NCBI RefSeq assembly: GCF_032191835.1
Contig: NC_083223.1
Location: 114,080,001-114,144,000, forward strand
Reading direction: 5' to 3'
DNA: 64,000 nucleotides
Source: Heteronotia binoei
Taxonomy: Eukaryota
The notes under the pieces are model-generated. The model was not told the DNA's origin. It searched no databases and was given only the letters and a program-made list of their open reading frames with translations. Positions 8,206 through 60,453 of this stretch are shown here, in pieces. Numbering within the stretch: the first letter of the stretch is position 1; each line of letters starts with the position of its first letter. The position numbers and the translations under genes were made by a program.

Positions 8206-10862
8206 GAACATAAGAATATAAAAGAAGACATGTTGGATCAAGCCAATAGCCCATTCAGTCCAACACTCTGTGTCACACAGTGGCTACCCCCCCTCCCAAA
8301 AAAAACAGGCACCATCAGGAGGTCTATCAGGACACTAGAAACCCTCCCACTGTGCCCCCCCAAGCACCAAGAATACAGAGCATCATTGCCCCAGACGGAG
8401 AGTTCCAACAATACGCCGTGGCTAATAGCCACTGATGGACCTCTGCTCCATATTTTTATCCAGTCCCCTCTTGAAGCTGTCAATGCTTGCAGCCGCCACC
8501 ACCTCCTGTGGTAGTGAATTCCATGTGTTAATCACCCTTTGGATGAAGAAGTACTTCCTTCTATCAGTTCTAACCTGATTGCTCAGCAATTTCATTGAAT
8601 GTCCACAAGTTCTCGTATTGTGAGAAAGGGAAAAAGTACTAATTTCTCTACTTCTTTATCCTATGCATAATCTTGCAAACCTCTGTCATGTCACCCCTCA
8701 GTCAACATTTCTCCAAGCTAAAGAACTCCAAGCCTTTTAACCTTTCATAATGGAGAAAGTGTTCCAACCCTTTAATCAATCTAGTTGCCCTTTTCTGCAT
8801 TTTCCCCAAAGCTATAATAATTTTTTTGCGATGCGGTGACCAGAATTGTACACAGTATTCCAAATGAGGTCGCATCACTGATTTATACAGGAGCATTATG
8901 ATACTGGCTGATATGTTTTCAATTCCTTTCCTAATAATTCCCAGCATTATATTGGCCTTTTTTATTGCAGTCTCACACTGTCTCAACATTGTCAGTGAGT
9001 TATCTACCATGACCCCAAGATCTCTCTTTTGATCAGTCTCCGTCAGTTCACACCCCATCAACTTGAATTTATAGTTAGGATTTTGGGCCCCAATGTGCAT
9101 TACTTTACACTTGGTCATGTTGAACCTCATTTGCCATGTTGACGCCCACTCGCCCAGGCTTGACAGATCCCACTGGAGTGCCTCACAATCCTTTCTGGTT
9201 CTCACCACTCTGAACAATGTGGTGTCATCTGCAAACTTAGCCACCTCACTGCTTACTCCCAACTCCAAATAATTAATGAACAAGTTAAAAAGCATCGGAC
9301 CCAGTACTGAGCCCTGCAGTACACCACTGCTTACCACCCTCCACTCTGAAAATTGCCCATTTATACTCACTCTCTGTTTCCTATTAATCAGCCAGTTTTT
9401 GATCCACAAGAGGACTTTGGGGCTTACTAAAGAGTCTTTGATGAGAAACTTTATCAAAAGCTTTCTGGAAGTCAAGGTAAACAAGATCTATTGAGTCCCC
9501 TTTGTCCACATGTTCACCCCCTTGAAGAACTTTGTCCACATGTTCACCCCCTTGAAGAACTCTAATAGGTTAGTGAGACAAGATCTTCCCTTACAGAACC
9601 CATGCTGAGACTTCCTCAATAACTTTTGTTCATCTATGTGCCTACTAATTCTCTCTTTAATGATGGTTTCCACCAACTTTTCTGGTATTGAAGTCAAACT
9701 GACTGGCCTGTAATTTCCCAGATCTCCTCTGGAACCTTTTTTTAAAGATGGGGGTGGCATTTTCTATCTTCCAGTCCTCAGGAACGGAGGAAGATTTCAA
9801 TGAAAGATTATATAGTTTTTTCAGGAGATCCACAAGAGCTCTTGGATGTAAGCCATCCAGGGCTGGTGACATTAGTTTTTAAATCTGCTCTGAGCCTGTT
9901 ATGGGAAAGGGTGGAATATAACCCTACTAAATAAATAAATAATCTATCAGTCGTAGGACCTCCTCTCTCATCACCTCAATCTGACTCACGTCTTTCAACA
10001 CCCAAAATCAGTGGTTCTGGAGTGGGCAAACCCAACTTCCACAGTGAAGATGGAGGCAAAAAATGCATTCATCTTCTCAGTCATTTCCCTATTGTCCTTC
10101 AATAGCCCTTTTACCTCTTGGTCATCCAAGGGCCCCACTGCCTCCCTCACTGGTTTCCTGCTTCTAATGTATTTGAATAATTTTTTATTGTTGGTCTTTT
10201 TGTTTTTTGCAATATGCTCCTCATATTCCCTTTTTGCCTGCCTGATCGCAGACTTGCATTTGATTTGCCACAGTCTGTGATCCCTTTTATTAACCTCACT
10301 TGGACTAGCTTTCCATCGCTCAAAGGAATCCTTCTTACCTTTTATAGCTTCCATTTGTTTGTTAACCATGCAGGCTTTTTAAAATTCCTATTTGTGCCTT
10401 TCCTGACTTGTGGTATATATTTTATCTGAGCTTCTGGAATTGTAGTTGTAAATAGCCTCCAAGCTTCCTCAAGAGTTTTGACTCTATTTACCTTTCCTTT
10501 CAGTTTCCTCTTCACATGCCTCCTCATCTCAGAGAATTAACCTCTTTTAAAGTTAAAAGTGGTTATTTTGGTCTTTTTGGGCAACTCCCTATCTATACAA
10601 ATGGTGAAATCAACAACATTATGGTCACTGTTCTCAAGCGATGAAATCAGTTTTACATCTCTCACCAGGTCTTGGGCATTATAGGACGAAGTCCAGGATT
10701 GCTCCGTCCCACAGGTAGGTTCTGTAACTATCTGCTCCATTGCACAGTCACTGAGAGTGTCTAGAAACTCAATCTCTTTCTCCTGACTGAAACACATATT
10801 GACCCAATCAATGTGCAGGTAGTTAAAATCACCTATTATGACACCGTTTTCATGGTTAGCCA
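8206..10862 (-). mobile_element. Degenerate 5'-truncated CR1 LINE
   Basis: Frameshifted endonuclease and RT pieces (ORF track 10537-10863, 10342-10527, 9995-10369, 9488-9760, 8702-9484) closely resemble the intact ORF2 at 15087-18053. CR1 3' tail at ~8206; internal deletions; 30-bp tandem duplication at 9501-9560. Confidence 0.9.
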
Positions 10863-11312
10863 CTCAGAGTTAGCTCACAGGCTGACTGAGATCTTAACAT
10901 TAAGCACACTAACTTGTGAGTAAGCCTGCATTAAGTTCCTCCTTGTCTGGGAGTAGCACAATATGTGTGAAAGAGCCACACGTGTTTCCTGAGTTTGGCC
11001 ACCACAGTCCTACACAGTCACATTGGATTTTTAGATAAAAGGATTATTGCTAATAACACCATATATGTTCTGAGCCTCCAAAGGGTCTGTAATGAACACT
11101 GGTACAGAATCATAGTTCAGTTTGGCCTACTGGTAACTTGAATGAACCCTACAGGTGCCACAGAACTGTGTATGGAGTTTCATTAGCAACAATAAAAAAC
11201 AACAATAATAAGCAAGACAAGAATTACAGTCCCCCTCCTGAATTCTCCTCTGGTTTAGAATCTGCACATCCCTATTTGCCAATAAAATGACAATTTGGGT
11301 TATACCTAGGGG

Positions 11313-14197: not shown

Positions 14198-15039
14198 TGA
14201 AAAGTTACAGATTTCAATTTTGGAAAAGGAAATACACTAGCTAGAAAATGTTATATGCCTCCCATGAAGCAGATGGGCCTTCCTTTCAAAGGAGGCACAG
14301 GATACTCTTGATTGGAGAGTCTCCAGCAAATGAGGAGAGGATGCTAAGTGGCTATTTAGAGAACCCACACCCATCTCACACAGGCTTTAGCTAGCACAGC
14401 TGAGGAGTGGAGATAAAGCTCTGCCTGTTGGATCACTTGACTTTTCACTTGCTTGGATAAATTGTGGGTGCTCACTTGCCAAGGGTATTAAACGGTGTGT
14501 GTGTGTACCATGTGTATGCATGGCTTGAGACGACTAGTGTTCTTGTTTCAGGGAGTTTCTGGTGGAGTTTACCCCACTCTTTTCAACCTGCCCCCCCTCA
14601 TATGCCTCAATTTCCCACTTCCTCCTTTTTAGATCCACATTAAGGCAATCTCCATGCAGCAACAGGTGCTTTTAGTGCAGGCTTTTCTTTCGGGGCACTA
14701 TCTGAAGCTGTTGTGGAGGTAGCATTGGAGACCTGGGCTGTTGTGTAGTAACACTCGCCCCACCCCTGGCTGGCCAATCAGCCTGACTTCAGTCTGGTTT
14801 CACCTTCAGGTGGTGGCCATTACTTGTGGGAATTTTGCTGCACAGAATGTAGTGAGTGGTGGGCTGAGAGTCTCGCCTTCGTTGGGCAGGGTGGCAACTG
14901 CTAGCAAAAGCAGTGGCATTTTACTGGGAGCCACTTCAGAATAGCCTGCAGGCCTAAGAACATAAGAACATAAGAGAAGCCATGTTAGATCAGGCCAATG
15001 GCCCATCCAGTCCAACATTCTGTGTCACACAGCGGCCAA

Positions 15040-15081
<42 letters not shown>

Positions 15082-15086
15082 TGTGG

Positions 15087-18053
15087 CTAATAGCCACTGA
15101 TGGACCTCTGCTCCATATTTTTATCTAACCCCTTCTTGAAGGTGGCTATGCTTGTGGACGCCACCACCTCCTGTGGCAGTGAATTCCACATGTTAATCAC
15201 CCTTTGGGTGAAGAAGTACTTCCTTTTATCCGTTTTAACCTGTCTGCTCAGCAATTTCATCGAATGCCCACGAGTTCTTGTATTGTGAGAAAGGGAGAAA
15301 AGTACTTCTTTCTCTACTTTCTCCATCCCATGCATTATCTTGTAAACTTCCATCATGTCACCCCTCAGTCGACGTTTCTCCAAGCTAAAGAGCCCTAAGC
15401 GTTTCAACCTTTCTTCATAGGGAAGGTGTTCCAGCCCTTTAATCATTTTAGTTGCCCTTTTCTGAACTTTCTCCAATGCTATAATATTCTTTTTGAGGTG
15501 GGGCGACCAGAACTGCACACAGTACTCCAAATGAGACCGCACCATCGATTTATACAGAGGCATTATGATACTGGCTGATTTGTTTTCAATTCCCTTCCTA
15601 ATAATTCCCAGCATGGCGTTGGCCTTTTTTATTGCAAACGCACAATGTCTTGACATTTTCAGTGAATTATCTACCATGACCCCAAGATCTCTCTCTTGGT
15701 CTGTCTCTGCCAGTTCACACCCCATCAACTTGTATTTGTAGCTGGGATTCTTGGCCCCAATGTGCATTACTTTGCACTTGGCCACATTGAACCGCATCTG
15801 CCACGTTGACGCCCACTCACCCAGCCTCAACAGATCCCTTTGGAGTTCCTCACAATCCTCTCTGGTTCTCACCACCCTGAACAATTTACTGTCATCCGCA
15901 AATTTGGCCACTTCACTGCTCACTCCCAACTCTAAATCATTTATGAACAAGTTAAAGAGGATGGGACCCAGTACCGAGCCCTGCGGCACCCCACTGCTTA
16001 CCGTCCTCCACTGCGAAGACTGCCCATTTATACTCACTCTCTGCTTCCTATTACTCAGCCAGTTTTTGATCCACAAGAGGACCTGTCCTTTTACTCCATG
16101 ACTCTCAAGCTTTCTAAGGAGCCTTTGATGAGGAACTTTATCAAAAGCTTTCTGGAAGTCAAGGTAAACAACATCTATCGGGTCTCCTTTGTCCACATGT
16201 TTGTTCACCCCCTCAAAGAAATGCAACAGGTTAGTGAGGCAAGATCTTCCCTTGCAGAACCCATGCTGAGTCTTCCTCAATAACCCGTGTTCATCAATGT
16301 GCCTACTCATTCTGTCCTTGATAATGGTTTCTACCAACTTTCCCGGTATTGAAGTCAGACTGACTGGCCTGTAATTTCCCGGATCTCCTCTGGAACCCTT
16401 TTTAAAGATGGGGGTGACATTTGCTACCTTCCAGTCCTCAGGAACGGAGGCAGATTTCAATGAAAGATTACAGATTTTTGTTAGAAGATCCACAAGTTCA
16501 ACTTTGAGTTCTTTCAGAACTCTCGGATGTATGCCATCCGGACCCGGTGACTTATTAGTTTTTAATTTGTCTATTAGTTGTAGGACCTCCTCTTTTGTCA
16601 CCTCAATCTGACTCAGGTCTTTCAACACCCCTTCCAATATTAGTGGTTCTGGGGCGGGCAAACACTTCTCATCTTCCACGGTGAAGACGGAGGCAAAAAA
16701 TGCATTCAGCTTCTCAGCCATTTCCCCATCCTCCTTCAGTAATCCTTTTACCCCATGGTCATCCAAGGGCCCCACTGCTTCCCTGGCTGGTTTCCTACTT
16801 CTAATATATTTGAAGAAATTTTTATTGTTGGTCTTTATGTTTTTTGCAATATGCTCCTCATAGTCCCTTTTTGCTTGCCTGATCACAGTCTTGCATTTGA
16901 TTTGCCACTGCCTGTGTTCCCTTTTATTAATCTCACTTGGACTGGTTTTCCACCGCCTAAAGGAGTCCTTCTTACCTTTTACAGCTTCCATTACTTTGTT
17001 TGTTAACCATGCTGGCCTCTTCTTATACCTGCTTGTGCCTTTCCTAACTTGTGGTATGTATTTTATCTGAGCTTCTAGGATTATAGTTTTAAATAGTCTC
17101 CAAGCTTCCCCAAGGGTTTTGACCGTATTTACCTTTCCTTTCAGTTTCCTCCTCACATGCCTCCTCATCTCAGAGAATTTACCCCTTTTAAAGTTAAATG
17201 TGGTTGTGGCGGTCTTTTTGGGCAACTCCCTATTTATACAAATGGTGAAATCAATAACATTATGGTCACTGTTCCCAAGCGGCGCAATCACTTTTACGTC
17301 TCTCACCAAGTCTTGGGCATTACTTAGGACCAGATCCAGGATCGCCCCACCCCTGGTAGGTTCTGAGACCATCTGCTCCATAGCACAGTCATTGAGAGCA
17401 TCAAGAAACTCAATCTCTTTCTCTCGACCAGAACACATATTGACCCAATCAATCTGCGGGTAGTTAAAATCACCTATTACGACACAGTTTTTACGTTTAG
17501 CCGCTATCTTTAATCCCTCCATCATATTATAATCGTCCTCTCTCTTTTGATTTGGTGGGCGATAACAAACTCCCATAGTTAAATTTCCTTTTGGGCCCTC
17601 TATTTCAACCCAAAGCATTTCTAAAAGGGAATCTAATTCTCTGACCTCAGTTTTACTGGACCGTATATCCTCTCTGACATACAGAGCCACCCCACCTCCA
17701 ACCCTTCCCTCCCTATCCTTCCGATATAACTTATATCCAGGAATCACCGTGTCCCACTGATTCTCCTCATTCCACCAAGTTTCTGAAATTCCCACAATGT
17801 CTATGTTTTCTCCCAACACTAAACATTCCAATTCACCAATTTTACTTCGGACACTTCTAGCATTTGCATACAAACATTTATAATATCCCAAGCAAGCTAG
17901 GCCCGGCTCCTCTCTGCTGCCGCCTCGAGACTCTAGCAGACAGTCCATACTGTTTGTCACCATCACAGTGGACAACTCTGATCCGTTACTCGGTAGAAAA
18001 ATAGAAGCCAACCCTTCATCTCTTTGAGACGAGTCCTCCCGAACCAGAGACAT
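15087..18053 (-). CDS. CR1 ORF2: APE endonuclease plus reverse transcriptase (988 aa, uninterrupted)
   Basis: APE motifs YANARS, GISETWW, IGDFN, SDHN; RT motifs LDFQKAFDKV, GVPQGSVLGP, FADD. Confidence 0.95.
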   Translation of the reverse strand: MSLVREDSSQRDEGLASIFLPSNGSELSTVMVTNSMDCLLESRGGSREEPGLACLGYYKCLYANARSVRSKIGELECLVLGENIDIVGISETWWNEENQWDTVIPGYKLYRKDREGRVGGGVALYVREDIRSSKTEVRELDSLLEMLWVEIEGPKGNLTMGVCYRPPNQKREDDYNMMEGLKIAAKRKNCVVIGDFNYPQIDWVNMCSGREKEIEFLDALNDCAMEQMVSEPTRGGAILDLVLSNAQDLVRDVKVIAPLGNSDHNVIDFTICINRELPKKTATTTFNFKRGKFSEMRRHVRRKLKGKVNTVKTLGEAWRLFKTIILEAQIKYIPQVRKGTSRYKKRPAWLTNKVMEAVKGKKDSFRRWKTSPSEINKREHRQWQIKCKTVIRQAKRDYEEHIAKNIKTNNKNFFKYIRSRKPAREAVGPLDDHGVKGLLKEDGEMAEKLNAFFASVFTVEDEKCLPAPEPLILEGVLKDLSQIEVTKEEVLQLIDKLKTNKSPGPDGIHPRVLKELKVELVDLLTKICNLSLKSASVPEDWKVANVTPIFKKGSRGDPGNYRPVSLTSIPGKLVETIIKDRMSRHIDEHGLLRKTQHGFCKGRSCLTNLLHFFEGVNKHVDKGDPIDVVYLDFQKAFDKVPHQRLLRKLESHGVKGQVLLWIKNWLSNRKQRVSINGQSSQWRTVSSGVPQGSVLGPILFNLFINDLELGVSSEVAKFADDSKLFRVVRTREDCEELQRDLLRLGEWASTWQMRFNVAKCKVMHIGAKNPSYKYKLMGCELAETDQERDLGVMVDNSLKMSRHCAFAIKKANAMLGIIRKGIENKSASIIMPLYKSMVRSHLEYCVQFWSPHLKKNIIALEKVQKRATKMIKGLEHLPYEERLKRLGLFSLEKRRLRGDMMEVYKIMHGMEKVEKEVLFSLSHNTRTRGHSMKLLSRQVKTDKRKYFFTQRVINMWNSLPQEVVASTSIATFKKGLDKNMEQRSISGY

Positions 18054-19529: not shown

Positions 19530-21965
19530 GCAGAAGAGAGGTGGACCTGCCAAAAGGCAGCTCCTGCCAAGAGACCTTCCGTACAGCTATTGTCCAATGA
19601 AGAAAGGAGCTTGGGCCATGAGCACGGTGCCCAGCATCCTAATTTTTCTACAGGGCAGGAAAGGATTAGGAAAAGGCCAGCAGAGAAGTGTTGGAACAAC
19701 TGGCTCACCGCTTATAATACTTACATTGCAGTGGTGGCTCAAGGGCAGCCTGTAAGGGCTTCAGTCTTGATAAAGTATATGGATATTATCCACAGAGCAT
19801 ATATGGAGTATTCTGGATGACGTCAGCTATGTTATGATGAGACGTTTGGCACAAAGGCAGCATTAGACCCTGAAGTAGTCTGATATATGGACAACCAACA
19901 GCTCTGATTCCAGTGTTTGGGTGCTGTTCACTCTTTGACAGTGAGATACTCCGATAGTGGGCAGGAGGTGCCTCCTGCTTGTGGCAACAGTCAGGCAGTT
20001 CAATCCTGGCTGGTTTATTTATTTATTTTATTCCACATATCCTGCTCGCCTTACAAGGGGGCTCAGGGAAGGTTAAAGGTCACATAAATTGTGACAATAA
20101 AAATAGAATATCATAATTATTACATAAATAAGGAAGAATAAAAGTTGGAAAGGTAATAAAAACCAGCACAAGACATTGCCTTGGTAGCAATGCTATGATG
20201 TACCCTTCTGAGTGGTGCTAATTATGTTGGCCACTGACCACAAGGGCCAGGGCTATCAGTGGTGGAGGCTAAGAAATGGACAAATTTGGATACCTGTTAC
20301 CTCAACTAACAGCTCCATAATATCAAGTATGAGCTGTGAGGATGCTATATAAGCATGTGAGCTCGATGTAGTTGCAGTGCTTGCAAAAATTCTCTCAGTA
20401 TTTGTCCCCTGATGGTATTGAATGTCTGCACAGTCTGTTTCAGTCCTTTCTCAAAGGGATGTGGATTCTTTGAGTATGTGGTGTCTTTTTTGGTGTCTTC
20501 TGTCTTGCTTCTGTCTTGTCTCACTGCACTGACCAGCTCAATTAATCACACTCCATTTATCCTAATTCAAGTACTCTCCTCACTTTTCTCTATGTACAAT
20601 GGCTTTTCATAGAGAAAAGTGAGCCGAGTACTTGAATTATGATGTACTAAAAGAAGGATAAGTGGAGCATGATTAATTGAGCTGGTCAGTGTAGTGAGAT
20701 AAGGTGGGGCAAAACAGAGGACGCCAATAAAGACACTGCATACTCAAAGAATCCACATCCTTTTGAGAAAGGACTGAAACAGACTGTGCAGACATTCAAT
20801 ACCATCAGTGGACAAATATGGAGATAATTTTTGCAAGCACTGCAACCACATTGAAGTCATATGTTCATATAGCATCATCACAGTTCTTTTGGAAAATTGT
20901 TTATAACCATTGTTAAGTGTCTGTTACACTGGTGTTATCATAAAGCTGTTGTGTAAAATATTGAGGTGCTTACAAAACAGTAAAGAATTGTATACTATTT
21001 AATAGACATAATAATTTGCTAGCACTGTAAGTTTACTTGATATTACGGATTTGTTACTCCCATGGTTTCAGTATTTGTTATTGTCAACTAACAGCACAAC
21101 AGAACAACACTGCCAGGGGCTGCTCTAGGAAGCAATACCACTTTGGCCATACATGCAATTGGTGGGGCAGAAATCGTACAGGGTCAGAATGCCCAAGGTG
21201 CAGACCCTTGGCAGGTAAGGAGGAAGGCACCGGTAGAGGATCTTCAAAGGGTCTTCAGCCCAATATGGCTTGATGCCCTAAACTTTGGTAGGGTAAGTAC
21301 CCCAATAAGCAGGATGTGGTTGCTGGAAAGATTTTAGTGCTGTTTTTCATATTCCTTATTCTGGCTCATACTGCTTCTACAAAACTAAGACCTTGAAGTT
21401 AGTCAAGGGCCTTGAGCATGCAGTTAGAGATAAATTACTGGAGAAGTATGCAGGTAGAATCATGACTCCTCCTGTAACCTTGTCAAATAATGATTTTAGG
21501 ATGTCTCCCCCCAGTGAAGTGCCAAAGAAAGCCCTGGGGGAGTACAGGATTATTTACTATTCATTATATCCTTAGGGAGAGTTGGTCGGTGATGGAATTC
21601 AGGGAGAGCTGTGATCAATTCAATATGCATCCTTTGACTCAGCGTGAACATTTTCAATCCAGTGGGATGAGAGCCACTGTCTAGGAAAGTGTAATATAAA
21701 GTCCATGTTCAGGTTTCTTCCTCTGCATCCAGTGGATTATGAATTGCTGGACTTTCAGTTCAAGGGCACTTTTATTTTGATAAGGCTCTCCTCATAATCA
21801 CTTTGATAATTTTGATAAGGCTTTCCTCACTTTCATACGTAACGCCAGGTCAGTTAAAAGTTATGCATTATTTTGATGACCTTTTGTTTGCTAGTCCCAG
21901 AACTCTGCAAAGTGTGCCTGGCTCATTTATGGGGAGCTTGCTAAGGAGAAGACTCAGGACTCCTG
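19530..21965 (+). mobile_element. Old, fragmented DIRS/Ngaro-type retrotransposon
   Basis: Gag-like piece LIKYMDIIHRAYMEYSG (19590-19820) matches ALIQYMDIIYKGYTMFSG of the element at 56441. RT remnants MSPPSEVPKKALGEYRII and HYFDDLLF at 21393-21960. Confidence 0.65.
20331..20886. repeat. Long imperfect palindrome (arms ~265-280 bp, 13-nt loop)
   Basis: 20331-20594 pairs with 20608-20886; centre CTCACTTTTCTCTATG, loop, CATAGAGAAAAGTGAG. Confidence 0.85.
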
Positions 21966-26258: not shown

Positions 26259-26432
26259 ATCCATAAGGGCAGCACTGATGTAATTGCTGCTCTCGCCATC
26301 AATAGTGATTAAGAAAGGCAGACATCTGTCAGGTGGCAGCATATCCATAAAGCGGTTCTTGTCATGGTTCCTTGGCAGACATGCTATACTGCAGTCTTCT
26401 GCTTGCAGACGAGGAGTCACCGAATTCAGGGT
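26259..26432 (-). CDS. PTPRK: PTPRK D2 exon ([58 protein letters not shown])
   Basis: 174 nt; TAG acceptor; GTAAGA donor. Confidence 0.95.
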
Positions 26433-26948
26433 CTAAACAACAGAAGACATCTCTGTTATGAGGTAGCGCCTCTTACACTTGGGCAGATTTGGGCATAAAA
26501 TCATTTTCCATGGAAGAGATGTTGAAAAGCAAGGTACCTGCCAACTTGGACTGCCTTTGAAGTTTGGTTATGACAGGAGGTGGAAATAGATATTCTGTAT
26601 ATACTGAATTAATTTTCAATCTGCATCCCAACATTACCCTATTCCTCTCTTCCAACCATCCTTGGAAAAAAATTGTGTAAAATTCATGTATGCTGTTCCC
26701 TTATTAAAATGCAAAATCACCTCCAGATGACCAAATGAATAGGCAGGTTATGGTAATTATAATCAGAGAATGGTACATTTACAGAAGACTTTGCAATGTA
26801 CGTAGTGGAAGAAATTGGTGATAAATGAGGCTTAACATAAGAAGGAGGCCAAAGGTTATGAATTGGACATAAAAACAGTTCTCTTTGCAAACTATTATAT
26901 GCAATAAAGTCAATGTAATATAAAAGAGCAACCAGCAACTGAAAATAC

Positions 26949-27098
26949 CTGAAATTCATCTTTGAGATGTGAAGAGTTTGTCTGAGAGTCTATTCTAATC
27001 ATGTCAAAATATGCAGCTTTGAATTCACAGACAGGGATAGCAGTTTCTCCACATAAGCAAGCTTCCAGAATGGCATCGTGAATAAAGATATACTGTTC
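26949..27098 (-). CDS. PTPRK: PTPRK D1-end/linker exon, conserved copy ([50 protein letters not shown])
   Basis: 150 nt; CAG acceptor; GTATTT donor; matches the recalled PTPRK sequence. Confidence 0.93.
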
Positions 27099-27970
27099 CT
27101 GCCACGGAAGGAACAGAAGAACATTTTAGTGATATTTCTTTTTTAAAAAATAAAATCTCTTTTCTTACCAAGATTTTTATTCAAGACAATTTAACTCAAT
27201 CCATTTTATACTGCTTTAGTGCCTTAAGCACAATCAGTTACTTGAGATTCATTTAATCAGAGTGAGTTCCTGAGAATGGCTAATTTAAATCTAAAGATGC
27301 TTAATGGTATCGATAATATAATAAAAGCACTTTCACCTTGGCAAAACTGAGCAGCCTGATTGGTTGGGACTGTGGTTCATCAATCTTTAGCCCGTCAAAC
27401 TATCAGTCAAGAGTACTTATGTGCCATTGGTTGAGTCTGCTCCTCACTCCTGCCTGAGTGGTTGTTGCTAGCCAGCAAAGCTGATTCTGTCAGTAAAAGG
27501 CAACCAACCTTAGTTCTGGAAGTTACTGGCTCTCCCTACTCTCCCATTGGCTGAGCTGCCTGTTGCATTGATTCACAGAGGAGAGAAAAAAACCCTTCTC
27601 TCAATTGGTTGAGGGAGGGAGGAAGAGGGAAACAGCCAGATAAAGGCTTCCCTTGATTGGCTGAGGACTCTGCCCTATCCTCCTCTGGAAAGGGGGGAAA
27701 ATGGCATCCTTTGGCAACAAACCAGATACAGAGAGGGAAAGTGAGACACAGAGAGGGATTGAAGTCCTGTGCTTAAGACCAACAACATTATCAGAGACAG
27801 ACTCTTGGTCTGAAAGTATAACTGAAGGCCTCTGAGGCAGAACTCATTGGGGCCAGTTCTGATTAGGGATGCCAGTTCCAGGTTGGTGGGGAATTCCTGG
27901 TGATTCTGTGGTGGAGTCTGAGGAGGGCATAAGAGTTAGGGCTTCAGAGCAGGGTTTTCAAGACACAATT

Positions 27971-28228
27971 GGATTTATATCCCGCCCTCCACTCTGAATC
28001 TCAGAGTGGCTCACAATCTCCTTTATCTTCCTCTCACACAACAGACACTCTGTGAGGTGGGTGGGGCTGAAAGGGTTCTCACAGCAGCTGCCCTTTCAGG
28101 GACAACCTCTGAGAGAGCTATGGCTGACCCAAGGACATTCCAGCAGCTGCAAGTGGTGGAGTGGGGAATCAAATCTGATTCTCCCAGATTAGAGTCCACA
28201 CACTTATCCACTACACCAAATTGGCTCT
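27971..28228 (-). mobile_element. tRNA-derived SINE (squam1-like) with L2-type tail
   Basis: The minus strand reads GAGAGCCAATTTGGTGTAGTGG... and ends GGAGGGCGGGATATAAATCC. Confidence 0.75.
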
Positions 28229-28545
28229 CAGGTTCTTCCTGTGGAAGCTGACTGGGTGATTTCAGACCAGTCACAGACTTCCAGCCTAACTTGGTTCACA
28301 GGGTTGTTGTTCAGATCAAAGCGGGAGAGGAGAATGATGTAAGGTGCTCTGGTCCTCCCCACACACTGTGGAGAAAGACTGTCCTTTTCCTATATGGAGG
28401 CTGTAGGGAGGTTGGAGGCGATGGAAAGCTGAAGTCAGAGGGGCAGATAAAGGGAAGGAGATAGGGTTGCCAACTCCAGGTTAGGAAATTCCTGAAGATT
28501 TAAAGAGTGGGGCCTAGAGACGGGGAACTATTCCCCTGAAAATAC

Positions 28546-28695
28546 CTGAAATTCATCTTTGAGATGTGAAGAGTTTGTCTGAGAGTCTATTCTAATCATG
28601 TCAAAATATGCAGTTTTGAATTCACAGACAGTGATAGCAGTTTCTCCACATAAGCAAGCTTCCAGAATGGCATCATGAACAGAGATATACTGTTC
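28546..28695 (-). other. PTPRK: Duplicated copy of the 150-nt PTPRK exon (alternative exon or pseudoexon)
   Basis: 145/150 identical to 26949-27098; frame open; CAG acceptor and GTATTT donor intact; encodes [31 protein letters not shown]...EFQ. Confidence 0.9.
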
Positions 28696-28759
28696 CTGCC
28701 ATTGAAGGAACAGAAGAACATTGTTGCCAATCTCCAGGTGAGTTTGAAAAAAAAAAAAA

Positions 28760-29235
28760 CAATAGCTCCGAGTAAAGAATACTGCTTGCAATGCAAATAG
28801 TTCTCAATAATGTCCAATGAAGATTTTTTTTTACATTTGTAGTAGAAAATTGATTCCTTTATTCATATCAAAAAATTTCAAAATATCATGAAAGTTCATA
28901 AATATTCTGGATTTGCACAGTGTATGCAGGAAGTATTTTGGATGTGATAGGTGAAGCATATGAGTAGGTAAAATTCGCTCGGATAAAGCAGTTATGCGAA
29001 ACAGGAGTTCTGTAGACCAGTTATGCCTGTAAACTGGTTTTGATTATTGATTTTTTCAATACTTCCTGCATACACTGTGCAAATCTGGAATATTTATGAA
29101 CTTTCATGATATTTTGAAATTTTTTGATATGAATAAAGGAATCAATTTTCTACTACAAGTGTAAAAAAGCATCTTCATTGGACATTATTGAGAACTATTT
29201 GCATTGCAAGCGGTATTTTTTACACGGAGCTATTG
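28760..29235. repeat. Inverted repeat, 178-bp arms (~95% identical), 120-bp spacer; MITE-like
   Basis: 28760-28937 pairs with 29058-29235; about 8 mismatches by manual comparison. Confidence 0.85.
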
Positions 29236-31099
29236 CTTTTTTCCCAGTCTTTTGTCTGTGTAGCTTTTGCCATGTTGCACAATCTCCAGGTGAGGGCGGA
29301 GACCACTCAGAATTACAGCTGCTCTCCAGATGGCAGAGATCAGCTCCACTTGAGTGGGGGGTGGTGGTGAAGGACTTCACCTGGGTGGGTGGTAAGACAG
29401 CAGGGAGGCACTCACCCAGAACCTCTTTCTAGAGCCCATTGTATTTTTCTCCACAACGGGCCTTATTCCTAATAGATAATAATTTGCATATAGTGATTTA
29501 ATTGGGGGGGGGAGGAGGTGCCTCCATTCCCATGTTTCTCTTTCAGAGCAATTTACTTCATTTGCAGTAGCTTTCATTCAAGAAATCCAAAGGTAGTGCA
29601 AAAATAGCTAAATGCTTTGGACTGGGACTCTTGAGTATTCCAAACAGAAGTGAATTTCCTCATGATTAATTACAGCAGAAAGTCTGAATACTGGATGACA
29701 AAAATTAATGATGAGTTCCTTGATATTTGCCACAACTTTGTGCTTGCTGTATTTATACAGTGAGATGATGTATTTACAGTCTTTCTATGCAAGATTACTC
29801 ATATGTAAGTCCCATTATGTCCAATGGGGCCTGATACCTAGCAAATGTGTTCAGGATTGTAGCAAATGTGTTCAGCTTGATACCTAGCAACTGTGCTCAG
29901 GATCTCAGTAGACCTAGACAGCCAAGGTAAGTTGTTTTCATATTATGACACTATAGTGCAGAACAGCATGTAGCTGACTGGGAAAACTGACCTCAAGTCA
30001 CCACTCAGCTATAAAAAACTTTGAATGACTGTGGGCCAGTTTAAGTTATTGTACCAAGCTTTGTGACTGTATCATGGGATATGAGGGGGTCCTGTACCCC
30101 TAATAAATATATTAAGATTCTCAGAAGCTGCATTGTAAGATCGTTCTGTTAGATTATTCTGCAAAATGAATTAACCATCATTTCCATATAAGTGACAAAT
30201 GTGTATACCTCTAAACAATGCTGGTGAAAATTTTTATGCTGCTACAACAGTTTATTTTGCTGTTAAATGTGAAGCAGCTTCTAATTCAACTGACTGCTAA
30301 GTTTGCTTTTTCAACAATAAATTTTGAACTTGTCAGTTGGCCTATTGCCTGGATAGCCTCTTACAACCATTCTTATACTGCACCTGCAAAATAATGGTTG
30401 CTTTATAAAGTCGCTGCCAGTCAAATAATCTGTGACCCGAGTGTTTAAAAGCAGATTAGAGCTAATACAGAGCACATGGGATAGGAAAAACAGGGTGACA
30501 CAAAGCGCACTTTTGGATGCTATATTTACCAGACGGTGCTGGCAACCATCAAGTTGTAAATGAGATGCCTACATCAGATGCCCACTCTTGTTCTGTCTAG
30601 AAAAAGCAAACATGTCCTTCCCACACTTTCTTCTGTTCTCTGACAACCACTGATAGCATGGTGCAGCCAAACAGATATTTTTATTATACACCTTATTTCT
30701 AGGTCTCCAAGAGATCAGAGAGATGTATTAAGGTATATAGTCACTCCCAGCCTAATATGTCATCTATGGAATTCCAAATTCATAACATTAGCTCCAGATC
30801 TATGCATTTTTTACACAGTTTCCAACATTAACATTTAAAGACATTGAAAGCATAAATGGATGACATCTGAGAACAGCCTACCATACTAAGCAGGATATAT
30901 GATATATTTATATGTGTGTGTGGAAAGTATAAGGTATTAGAACATTTTTGGAAATTTCAGCTGAGTGAGATAAGTCACAGAAACATATTTCATTGCCTTG
31001 TTTAAAAGCTGTACTTTGTCTACAAACAGTCCACTGACTAGGCAAATGAATCTGACTGTCTGGGGCAGTGATTCTTGGGCTTGGGGGGGTGCAAAGTGG

Positions 31100-31227
31100 A
31101 AGGGCTTCTAGCCCCACCTGTGAACCTCCTGATGGCACTTGGGGGGTTTTTTGGCCACTGTGTGACACAGAGTGTTGGACTGGATAGGCCATTGGCCTGA
31201 TCCAACATGGCTTCTCTTATGTTCTTA
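31100..31227 (+). mobile_element. CR1 3' tail fragment
   Basis: GGCCACTGTGTGACACAGAGTGTTGGACTGGA...CTTCTCTTATGTTCTTA; same tail as the CR1 at 14956, opposite strand. Confidence 0.85.
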
Positions 31228-31659
31228 ACATCTTTGATGCAACTGAGCTAGAGTGAAAAATGTACATCCTTTGCCAGCATCTAGCAATTGCATTTCATGA
31301 AAAGTCCCCAAGATTTTATTTATAGTTTGAATCTAGAGTCCAAATGCCTTTCTGTGATTCAGGATACTTGTTTACATTATGGACAGGACAGCAGTCTAGG
31401 AAGGCCATATCTGGAACTTAATAACACAGTGTCAGACCAACTAGTTCAATGTGCATTTTTCAAAAGTGGCCAGATCAACATTCTTTTGAAAGCTACAATT
31501 AGGATGTAAAGGCAACAGCTCTTTTCCACTTGTGTTAACAGCTCAATTTCCCTCCAATGGATTGTCTTCATGAAGCAGCATTCTGTGATTCAAGGCTAAA
31601 TGCCTCAAGTAGAACACTTCACTAATAATTATTAAATGCAGATAATGAAGCATTAATAC

Positions 31660-31795
31660 CTCTGTCTGTACCATATTGATGCGGCGTGAACGCAGTGCTT
31701 TGACACAATTGTAGATGTCCACAACACCTTCTCTTTCTGCCATGTCTAGCATGATGTCAATTACAATGTAACAGCCAGTTCGTCCAGCTCCAGCA
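31660..31795 (-). CDS. PTPRK: PTPRK D1 exon ((S)[45 protein letters not shown])
   Basis: 136 nt; AAG acceptor; GTATTA donor; completes the [11 protein letters not shown]-loop. Confidence 0.95.
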
Positions 31796-40909: not shown

Positions 40910-41065
40910 NNNNNNNNNNNNNNNNNNNNNNNNNNNNNNNNNNNNNNNNNNNNNNNNNNNNNNNNNNNNNNNNNNNNNNNNNNNNNNNNNNNNNNNNNNN
41001 NNNNNNNNNNNNNNNNNNNNNNNNNNNNNNNNNNNNNNNNNNNNNNNNNNNNNNNNNNNNNNNNN
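40910..41065. other. Assembly gap (156 N)
   Basis: Run of N. Confidence 1.
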
Positions 41066-54775: not shown

Positions 54776-54931
54776 NNNNNNNNNNNNNNNNNNNNNNNNN
54801 NNNNNNNNNNNNNNNNNNNNNNNNNNNNNNNNNNNNNNNNNNNNNNNNNNNNNNNNNNNNNNNNNNNNNNNNNNNNNNNNNNNNNNNNNNNNNNNNNNNN
54901 NNNNNNNNNNNNNNNNNNNNNNNNNNNNNNN
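54776..54931. other. Assembly gap (156 N)
   Basis: Run of N. Confidence 1.
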
Positions 54932-59579: not shown

Positions 59580-60453
59580 AGATGCTGTTGTTCCTGGCCA
59601 GAGGAGCCGAGTTCTCATCTGTGGACACAGCTATGTGTTTTGGGTCGCACATCAGGCTTTGAGAACTTCAGTCGGTTCTCAGCTGGGACTCAGCCAATAT
59701 GTTACTGTTGAATGGCGGGGGCACCGGGGCCTGGCCTGCTGCCATTGTTATTTCATGGGAATGTGGGCCCTCCTCTTGAGGTTTTAATCATCCAACTGGG
59801 AGGGAATGATCTAGGGCTAGTAAAAGGCAAGGCTTTGGTCTTGCAGGTCTGTGGGAATTTTTGGTACATTAGGGAGAGATGGCCCGGGACCACTATAATT
59901 TGGTCAACCATGATCCCCCACCTTGTTTGGCATAGTGGTTGGGACCCTGCAGGTATAGAGAGGACCCTTTATAAAGCTAACAAAGTAATTAGGAAGGCAT
60001 TGGAAGGGGGGTTGGGCCACTTTCTGCCCCACCCGGATATTTCTACGAAATTTCCTGACCTCTACAAAGGGGATAAGAACATAAGAGAACATAAGAGAAG
60101 CCATGTTGGATCAGGCCAACGGCCCATCAAGTCCAACACTCTGTGTCACACAGTGGCAAAAAATTTTATATACACACATACACTGTGGCTAATAGCCACT
60201 GATGGACCTGTGCTCCATATTTTTATCTAAACCCCTCTTGAAGGTGGCTATACTTGTGGCCGCCACCACCTCCTGTGGCAGTGAATTCCACATGTTAATC
60301 ACCCTTTGGGTGAAGAAGTACTTCCTTTTATCCTTTTATCCGTTTATCCGGGATGGGGTGCATCTCTCTGAAAAAGGTAACATGCTTTTCTTGAGAGATC
60401 TCTGGCAAGGGCTGCGGGTGGCCTTGGGCCTCCTGGTGGGTACTAAGCCCTAA
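59580..60453 (+). pseudogene. SGNH hydrolase ORF of the Ngaro element, split by a CR1 insertion
   Basis: Block I CGHSY, block III QLGGND; block V YKGD/GVHLS is rejoined once 60075-60354 is removed. Confidence 0.8.
60075..60349 (-). mobile_element. Short CR1 3' fragment nested in the Ngaro hydrolase ORF
   Basis: Near-identical to the tail at 14956-15235; 5-bp direct repeat GGGAT at 60070-60074 and 60350-60354. Confidence 0.9.

Follow-up and report, generated by a model that had tools for sequence, protein, structure and literature searches.

A young copy of a PTPRK exon, probably skipped, inside a lineage-specific intronic insertion of Heteronotia binoei

The window analysed here, a stretch of 64,000 nucleotides in its whole length, carries on its minus strand exons of PTPRK, the gene of a type R2B receptor tyrosine phosphatase, along which further motifs of the tandem PTP domains D1 and D2 are spread. 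The first 26 residues encoded by the exon that concerns us (copy A) are identical, 26 of 26, to the C-terminus of human PTPRK D1 (PDB 2c7s, E 1.3e-11), and this PTPRK structure outranks PTPRU and PTPRT as a match for it; the exon comprises the end of D1 helix alpha6/Q-loop region together with the D1-D2 linker. The exon upstream of it carries the catalytic-loop signature and ends in a whole codon (..MVQTE), and the exon downstream begins in frame, its match to the Pfam Y_phosphatase model being weak (E 0.015, below the curated cut-off), as is expected for the start of D2. The gene was named as PTPRK in an earlier note on this DNA, which also took the exon for the end of D1 plus the linker and assigned it phase 0-0. 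All three assignments hold: the neighbouring exons derive from tandem PTP domains (with the downstream Pfam match below cut-off), copy A matches the C-terminus of PTPRK D1 in 2c7s, and the exons on either side end and begin in frame. Two runs of N, each of exactly 156 nt (40910-41065 and 54776-54931), lie where further D1 exons are expected.

A repeat search of the 64-kb window returned a single pair of its kind, a direct repeat of 187 nt with 96% identity and a spacing of 1,597 nt, whose blastn match (E 1e-84) is far beyond chance. Each copy is made up of 27 nt of acceptor-side intron, an open exon of 150 nt and 10 nt of donor-side intron, and in the alignment homology stops abruptly at both edges of the block; neither the 1,410-nt interval between the copies nor the two outer flanks are related to one another. 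The second copy (copy B, Table 1) differs from copy A at 7 of the 187 positions, of which two lie at acceptor positions -7/-6 and five within the exon, where the changes from A to B are F>S, I>V, a silent CAC>CAT at a CpG, P>T and A>T. The two exons are equal in length (150 nt), both of phase 0-0 and neighbours in position, and neither contains an in-frame stop. Copy B would encode EQYISVHD...ITV...KTA... and retains the splice dinucleotides of an exon, with an acceptor cag at 28698-28696 and a donor gt at 28545-28544. The coordinates, the counts and the five substitutions given in the earlier note were thus all reproduced in the alignment of the two copies. Its view that this is a local copy and not a haplotype duplication agrees with the sharp edges and unrelated flanks of the 187-nt repeat, and its statement that B kept its frame and splice signals is borne out by the lack of a stop, an identical donor and a near-identical acceptor.

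Table 1. Features in and around the intron that holds copy B, listed in transcript order (window coordinates; L001 is a contig from a related squamate)
Feature	Position	Strand	Remarks
Upstream PTPRK D1 exon	31660..31795	-	136 nt; Pfam PF00102 positions 178-222, E 3.8e-13
Left target-site duplication	29472..29481	-	TATTATCTAT; single occurrence in L001
Lineage-specific repeat-like insertion	27319..29471	-	2,153 bp; holds R1, hairpin, R2, copy B and SINE-like sequence
R1, partner of R2	29273..29294	-	ctcacctggagattgTgcaaca; far side of hairpin; ends repeat-like sequence
Fold-back hairpin	28753..29242	-	185-nt arms (29242-29058 and 28937-28753), 95% complementary, 120-nt loop
R2, direct duplicate	28722..28742	-	21 nt, ctcacctggagattg-gcaaca; abuts copy B; 15-nt exact match to R1
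Copy B, derived patch	28536..28722	-	exon-like part 28695-28546, no stop
Right target-site duplication	27309..27318	-	TATTATCGAT; one mismatch to left
Copy A, parent block	26939..27125	-	exon 27098-26949, 150 nt; 27 nt acceptor and 10 nt donor intron
Downstream exon, D2 start	26259..26432	-	174 nt; TLNSVTP...KNRFMD...; Pfam PF00102 positions 1-35

Which of the two copies came first can be read from two relatives. L001 is a contig of 1,342 bp (Logan, SRR13336340), whose intron differs from that of the window by a JC distance of 0.175-0.19, and L002 is a 15-kb contig from a species more distant than L001. Positions 467-1319 of L001 align to 27318-26494 of the window, that is to copy A with both of its native flanks, and positions 30-476 align to 29944-29472. 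L002 has four exons as in the window, an intron of 1.8 kb and one copy of the exon within 10 kb upstream. The residues encoded by A, L001 and L002 are the same at 50 of 50 positions. Compared with L001, seven silent states specific to A are common to A and B, and B must therefore have been copied from A after the split from the L001 lineage. By this comparison the parent is A, from which B was derived, and all four replacements are derived and private to B. A search by protein words, in which the 87-aa open reading frame around B was the query and the candidates were limited to proteins of 48-152 aa, returned 30 short proteins from public assemblies, all 30 of them A-like; a B-like peptide was not found among these matches, two of which gave access to contigs for the comparison. 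A human origin of L001 to L003 was rejected, given that L001 matches the gecko intron and that the P0002 cluster occurs on just two contigs, from two sister runs.

Copy B is situated midway in an insertion of 2,153 bp. L001 joins the orthologue of position 29472 directly to that of 27318, without anything corresponding to 29471-27319, and the window has at this place a target-site duplication of 10 bp (9 of 10 matching), whose 10-mer is present once in L001. Since L001 runs across the site with a single 10-mer, the insertion must have taken place in the lineage of the window. The block is hence defined by its presence in one lineage and absence from the other and by its target-site duplication; recognisable termini and, within the window, a multicopy family were not found. 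In particular, no terminal inverted repeat could be detected, the corresponding alignment scoring no better than shuffled sequence, by which a hAT-type element (8-bp nTnnnnAn target plus short terminal inverted repeats) was rejected as well, and neither a poly(A) tract nor any other terminus could be recognised. Apart from B and the arms of the hairpin, the 64-kb window holds no other copies of parts of the insertion at word size 7. ARAGORN and Rfam gave no match on the insertion, the open reading frame across the hairpin, R1 and the left repeat drew no candidate protein in the search for relatives, that of the SINE-like part found no match in a protein search, and none of eight open reading frames (0/8) was present in the protein collection by exact-sequence look-up. 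The stretch 28250-27965 may be a tRNA-derived squamate SINE. The downstream part of the insertion (27965-27319) contains about five CCAAT motifs (cagCCAATgg-like), spaced by eye roughly 60-70 nt apart, in which TRF calls no tandem array.

The surroundings of B are themselves composite. In the order of the transcript, R1 is followed by about 30 nt of unexplained sequence, the hairpin, the four letters 'caaa', R2, copy B and more repeat-like sequence, and the last a of R2 is at the same time the first base of the copied block. Three short segments thus lie next to each other: 187 nt with their source at a distance of 1.6 kb, 21 nt with theirs at 0.55 kb, and an inverted copy of 185 nt. Their ages agree, because the JC distance between the hairpin arms (0.050) predicts 6.3 differences between A and B if both are of the same age, and 7 are observed. 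Microhomology at the junctions amounts to 1 nt between R2 and B; the hairpin is separated from R2 by the unexplained 4-nt 'caaa', and the junction of B with the sequence downstream shows no evident microhomology. A target-site duplication flanking the hairpin is not visible by eye, and the 64-kb window contains no further copy of the hairpin.

How might such a patch have come about? We envision a single template-switching repair event inside the inserted element, which would have written the hairpin, R2 and copy B together: after a fold-back, two short stretches would have been copied from templates at distances of 0.55 kb and 1.6 kb, and the second of these would have placed patch B 1.6 kb upstream of the parent exon, within the repeat-rich 2,153-bp insertion but still in the same intron. 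That patch, R2 and hairpin stem from one event we infer from their adjacency and similar age only, and the hairpin may instead be a foldback element that has no connection with the other two. Judged by the distances, the age of the event would be approximately one quarter to one third of that of the split from the species of L001. Tandem exon duplication, which the earlier note had assumed, does not describe this arrangement: the copies neither abut nor have related flanks, homology is confined to 187 nt, and B is a 187-nt patch in a lineage-specific insertion with a target-site duplication, not a head-to-tail copy. A tandem 187-nt duplication that was later split by the insertion was rejected too, as the 220 nt upstream of A are orthologous in L001 and the flanks of B are not.

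Alternatively, the whole 2,153-bp block may be a single mobile element that picked up the exon fragment by transduplication or transduction before it was inserted as a unit, in which case B would not be a later repair patch. The clean 10-bp target-site duplication that bounds the block and the absence of the entire block from L001 speak for such an origin, as does the short distance, just ~200-380 bp, between the source piece and the insertion site. Against it stand the lack of terminal inverted repeats, of poly(A) and of any recognisable terminus, the lack of a second copy of any part in 64 kb and of relatives of its open reading frames, as well as the resemblance of the R1/R2 duplicate and the hairpin to a local rearrangement. 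Moreover, the fragment stems from the intron in which the block now lies, and such a piece is not what one would expect in an element of outside origin. We therefore regard capture by an element as unlikely, if far from absurd, and prefer the local repair event.

Both origins have known counterparts. Template-switching repair gives rise to fold-back inversions, to FoSTeS/MMBIR-type rearrangements and to filler DNA from abortive gap repair at transposon sites. Like these products, the region of B joins short direct and inverted segments from within ~2 kb that are of the same apparent age; unlike them, it displays minimal microhomology (1 nt at R2/B). Mobile elements are likewise known to capture gene fragments, as in Pack-MULEs, Helitrons and LINE transduction. 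Copy B resembles such captures in being a host exon fragment inside a block bounded by a target-site duplication, but the insertion has no terminal inverted repeats, poly(A) tail, Helitron ends or other copies in the window, and the fragment derives from the same intron instead of a distant donor locus.

Repeats of other kinds occur elsewhere in the window. A downstream intron has a second long fold-back at 20331-20886 (178-nt arms, 89% complementary, 200-nt loop), the sequence of which is unrelated to the hairpin beside copy B. A block of ~2.7 kb is present twice, at 8211-10864 and 14956-17505, with 84-90% identity and ~6.65 kb apart; either a single element was inserted twice, or the gene underwent an older segmental duplication. 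A short interspersed repeat, AGAACATAAGAGAAGCCATGTTGGATCAGGCC..., has four copies in the window (31139-31234, 8211-8299, 14956-15043 and 60086-60164), one of which lies in the intron of B, with a plus-strand orientation opposite to that of the other three. The window starts with a perfect inverted repeat of 72 nt (1-222; 100% complementary, 78 nt apart).

Copy B is, as expected of a pseudoexon, an exon-like sequence with plausible splice sites inside an intron, and its splice signals are close to those of its parent. The donor, CAG/GTATTTTCAG (CAG/GTATTT), is identical in A and B, the stretch from -20 to -4 holds 12 pyrimidines of 17 in B and 13 of 17 in A, and B keeps 97% of the exon body of the constitutive parent exon. 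The only yUnAy motif that might serve B as a branch site is CTCAC, a motif that the earlier note had placed ~45 nt upstream and that we locate at -44, with the branch A at 28739; it lies within R2, just outside the copied block. An AG follows six bases past CTCAC, and from there on the sequence is free of AG up to the acceptor of B. The likely branch region of the parent, read from the sequence without a motif match, would be situated around -30, just beyond the copied 27-nt flank. This likely region stayed uncopied, and B would depend on the chance CTCAC. The hairpin upstream folds as RNA at -308.6 kcal/mol (z -31), with its predicted stem ending ~11 nt upstream of the branch candidate. If B were spliced, an intron of 2,964 nt would separate it from the upstream exon and one of 1,447 nt from A. 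A small acceptor hairpin, CUGUUCCU...AGGAACAG, is predicted in both copies, at 28713-28690 and 27116-27093; in it the AG of the 3' splice site pairs with the first bases of the exon, and it lies wholly within the copied block.

At the level of protein the two copies have behaved very differently. In the exon, A, L001 and L002 together have 15 variable sites, all of them silent, whereas the changes in B comprise four replacements and one silent substitution, with a dN/dS of 0.97. The ratio of replacements to silent changes in B (4:1) differs from the 0:8 seen between A and L001 (Fisher p 0.007) and from the 0:15 seen in A, L001 and L002 together (Fisher p 0.001). The four positions replaced in B are conserved at 90% or above among 27 homologues, and the F of QYIF, which is S in B, is kept in the structures of PTPRK, PTPRU, PTPRT and PTPRG; the V that B has at the position after this F is the natural state in PTPRT. 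B is thus, on the strength of five substitutions and ~3% divergence, drifting as neutral DNA to all appearances, while the parent exon is frozen. The earlier note had remarked that 4:1 fits neutral drift, and with no replacement in 15 changes of the parent exon the difference is now significant. On the presence of the copy and dN/dS in relatives, to which it had also pointed, the outcome is that L001 lacks the insertion with B, that L002 has one copy of the exon in the 10 kb compared and that B has the value given above. Neutrality would also fit an extra segment that is included and functionally indifferent.

What becomes of B during splicing? Copy B is probably a young, lineage-specific pseudoexon that is mostly skipped. 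We envision that the spliceosome would pass over it in most transcripts, or that B would yield at most a minor in-frame isoform, because the change of QTEEQYIF to QTEEQYIS in D1 should be purged by selection if the exon were commonly used. Partial, even frequent, inclusion of B is nevertheless quite possible, given its donor, acceptor, pyrimidine tract and branch candidate. It is conceivable, with a probability that we put well below even, that B is spliced in some tissue, and a PTPRK isoform specific to the gecko would then have a D1 with QYIS in place of the conserved QYIF. In such an isoform either the D1-D2 linker would be longer by 50 residues or the parent exon would be missing, and since B directly follows the QTE codons, joining it to the upstream exon would alter D1.

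The first alternative to skipping is that B works as a cassette exon spliced in tandem with A, which would produce an in-frame PTPRK isoform with 50 additional residues, its D1 ending with the helix of B (QYISV) and its linker into D2 coming from A. The identical donor, the pyrimidine tract of 12/17 against 13/17 and the CTCAC at -44 with its AG-free zone are all consistent with this, and B has no stop, a length divisible by 3 and introns of ordinary size. Conversely, the four replacements fall on invariant positions, including the F of QYIF, at a dN/dS that contrasts with zero in the orthologues; the likely branch region of the parent was not copied; a hairpin with a 185-bp stem ends ~11 nt upstream of the sole branch candidate; and a B-like peptide was not found among proteins of 48-152 aa. 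Regular use of B as a cassette exon accordingly seems doubtful to us, and we continue to favour skipping.

A second alternative, that A and B form a nascent mutually exclusive pair of which either one is included, had been raised in the earlier note. It draws on the homology of the two exons, on their common length and phase, on their place in one intron and on their intact sites, and such pairs classically arise by tandem duplication of an exon (PMC9741552, PMC9013439). Mutual exclusion is based on a distance of less than 50 nt between donor and branch site, on incompatibility of U2- and U12-type sites, on loss of frame upon double inclusion or on competing RNA structures (PMC5740500, PMC6071210, PMC9013439). 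At A and B the first three are absent, because 1,447 nt separate the donor of B from the acceptor of A, both exons are bounded by GT-AG and 150 nt preserve the frame if both are included. As to competing structures, pairing between a selector and a docking site was not seen in the RNA fold, the acceptor hairpin being internal to each copy. Provided that B is recognised in the first place, inclusion along with A would be the default, not exclusion. The purifying selection that a mutually exclusive pair would display is likewise not seen in B, and the duplication is not tandem. With three bases of exclusion absent (PMC5740500) and no purifying selection seen in B, the proposal of a mutually exclusive pair at birth was not upheld, and we hold it to be very improbable. 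That B is an artefact of assembly, absent from the animal, is more improbable still: collapsed or duplicated haplotypes would leave long, nearly identical flanks, whereas the copies have 7 differences in 187 nt, sharp edges and unrelated flanks, the pattern of substitution is neutral and no assembly gap is nearby, the closest run of N to the repeat being the one at 40910.

Copy B belongs to a known kind of sequence, the intronic exon copies. Most of those catalogued in human genes are described in a survey as weakly expressed or as expressed in particular tissues only (PMC9013439; Letunic et al. 2002 cited therein). Like them, B is homologous to a neighbouring exon, sits in the intron next to it, shares its orientation and frame and has splice-like sites; unlike them, its unit is just 187 nt with almost no intron. 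It also resides in a repeat-rich insertion, a context that was deliberately filtered out of that survey. With mutually exclusive exons and the substitution of tandem duplicated exons (PMC9741552, PMC5740500) the pair of A and B has in common homology, equal length and phase, and location in one gene. Events of the latter kind are mostly ancient, with both copies under selection and a mechanistic basis of exclusion (PMC9741552, PMC5740500), whereas B is young, evolves neutrally and did not arise in tandem, and for the pair a mechanism of exclusion was not found. What is unusual about B is the small unit, the dated, lineage-specific insertion and the adjoining fold-back.

Intronic exon copies are the raw material of alternative and mutually exclusive exons, and the well-studied cases are nearly all ancient; very young copies such as B display the newborn state. 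The present case indicates that an exon and both of its splice sites can be copied as a 187-nt patch, apparently by error-prone repair within an inserted mobile element and without tandem duplication, and that intact splice signals can persist during decay at the protein level. If B is used, it would constitute a dated birth of an exon in a conserved signalling phosphatase, by way of a template-switching patch in a transposon-rich insertion. If it is not, B may serve as a natural decoy exon for tests of which features other than splice sites define an exon. Another deviation from the usual form of this exon was met in a contig of 794 bp from a different species (P0030, ENA), whose open reading frame enters the exon only at ..ETAIPVCEF, after unrelated pyrimidine-rich sequence, and which may represent a partial copy of the exon or a different exon boundary.
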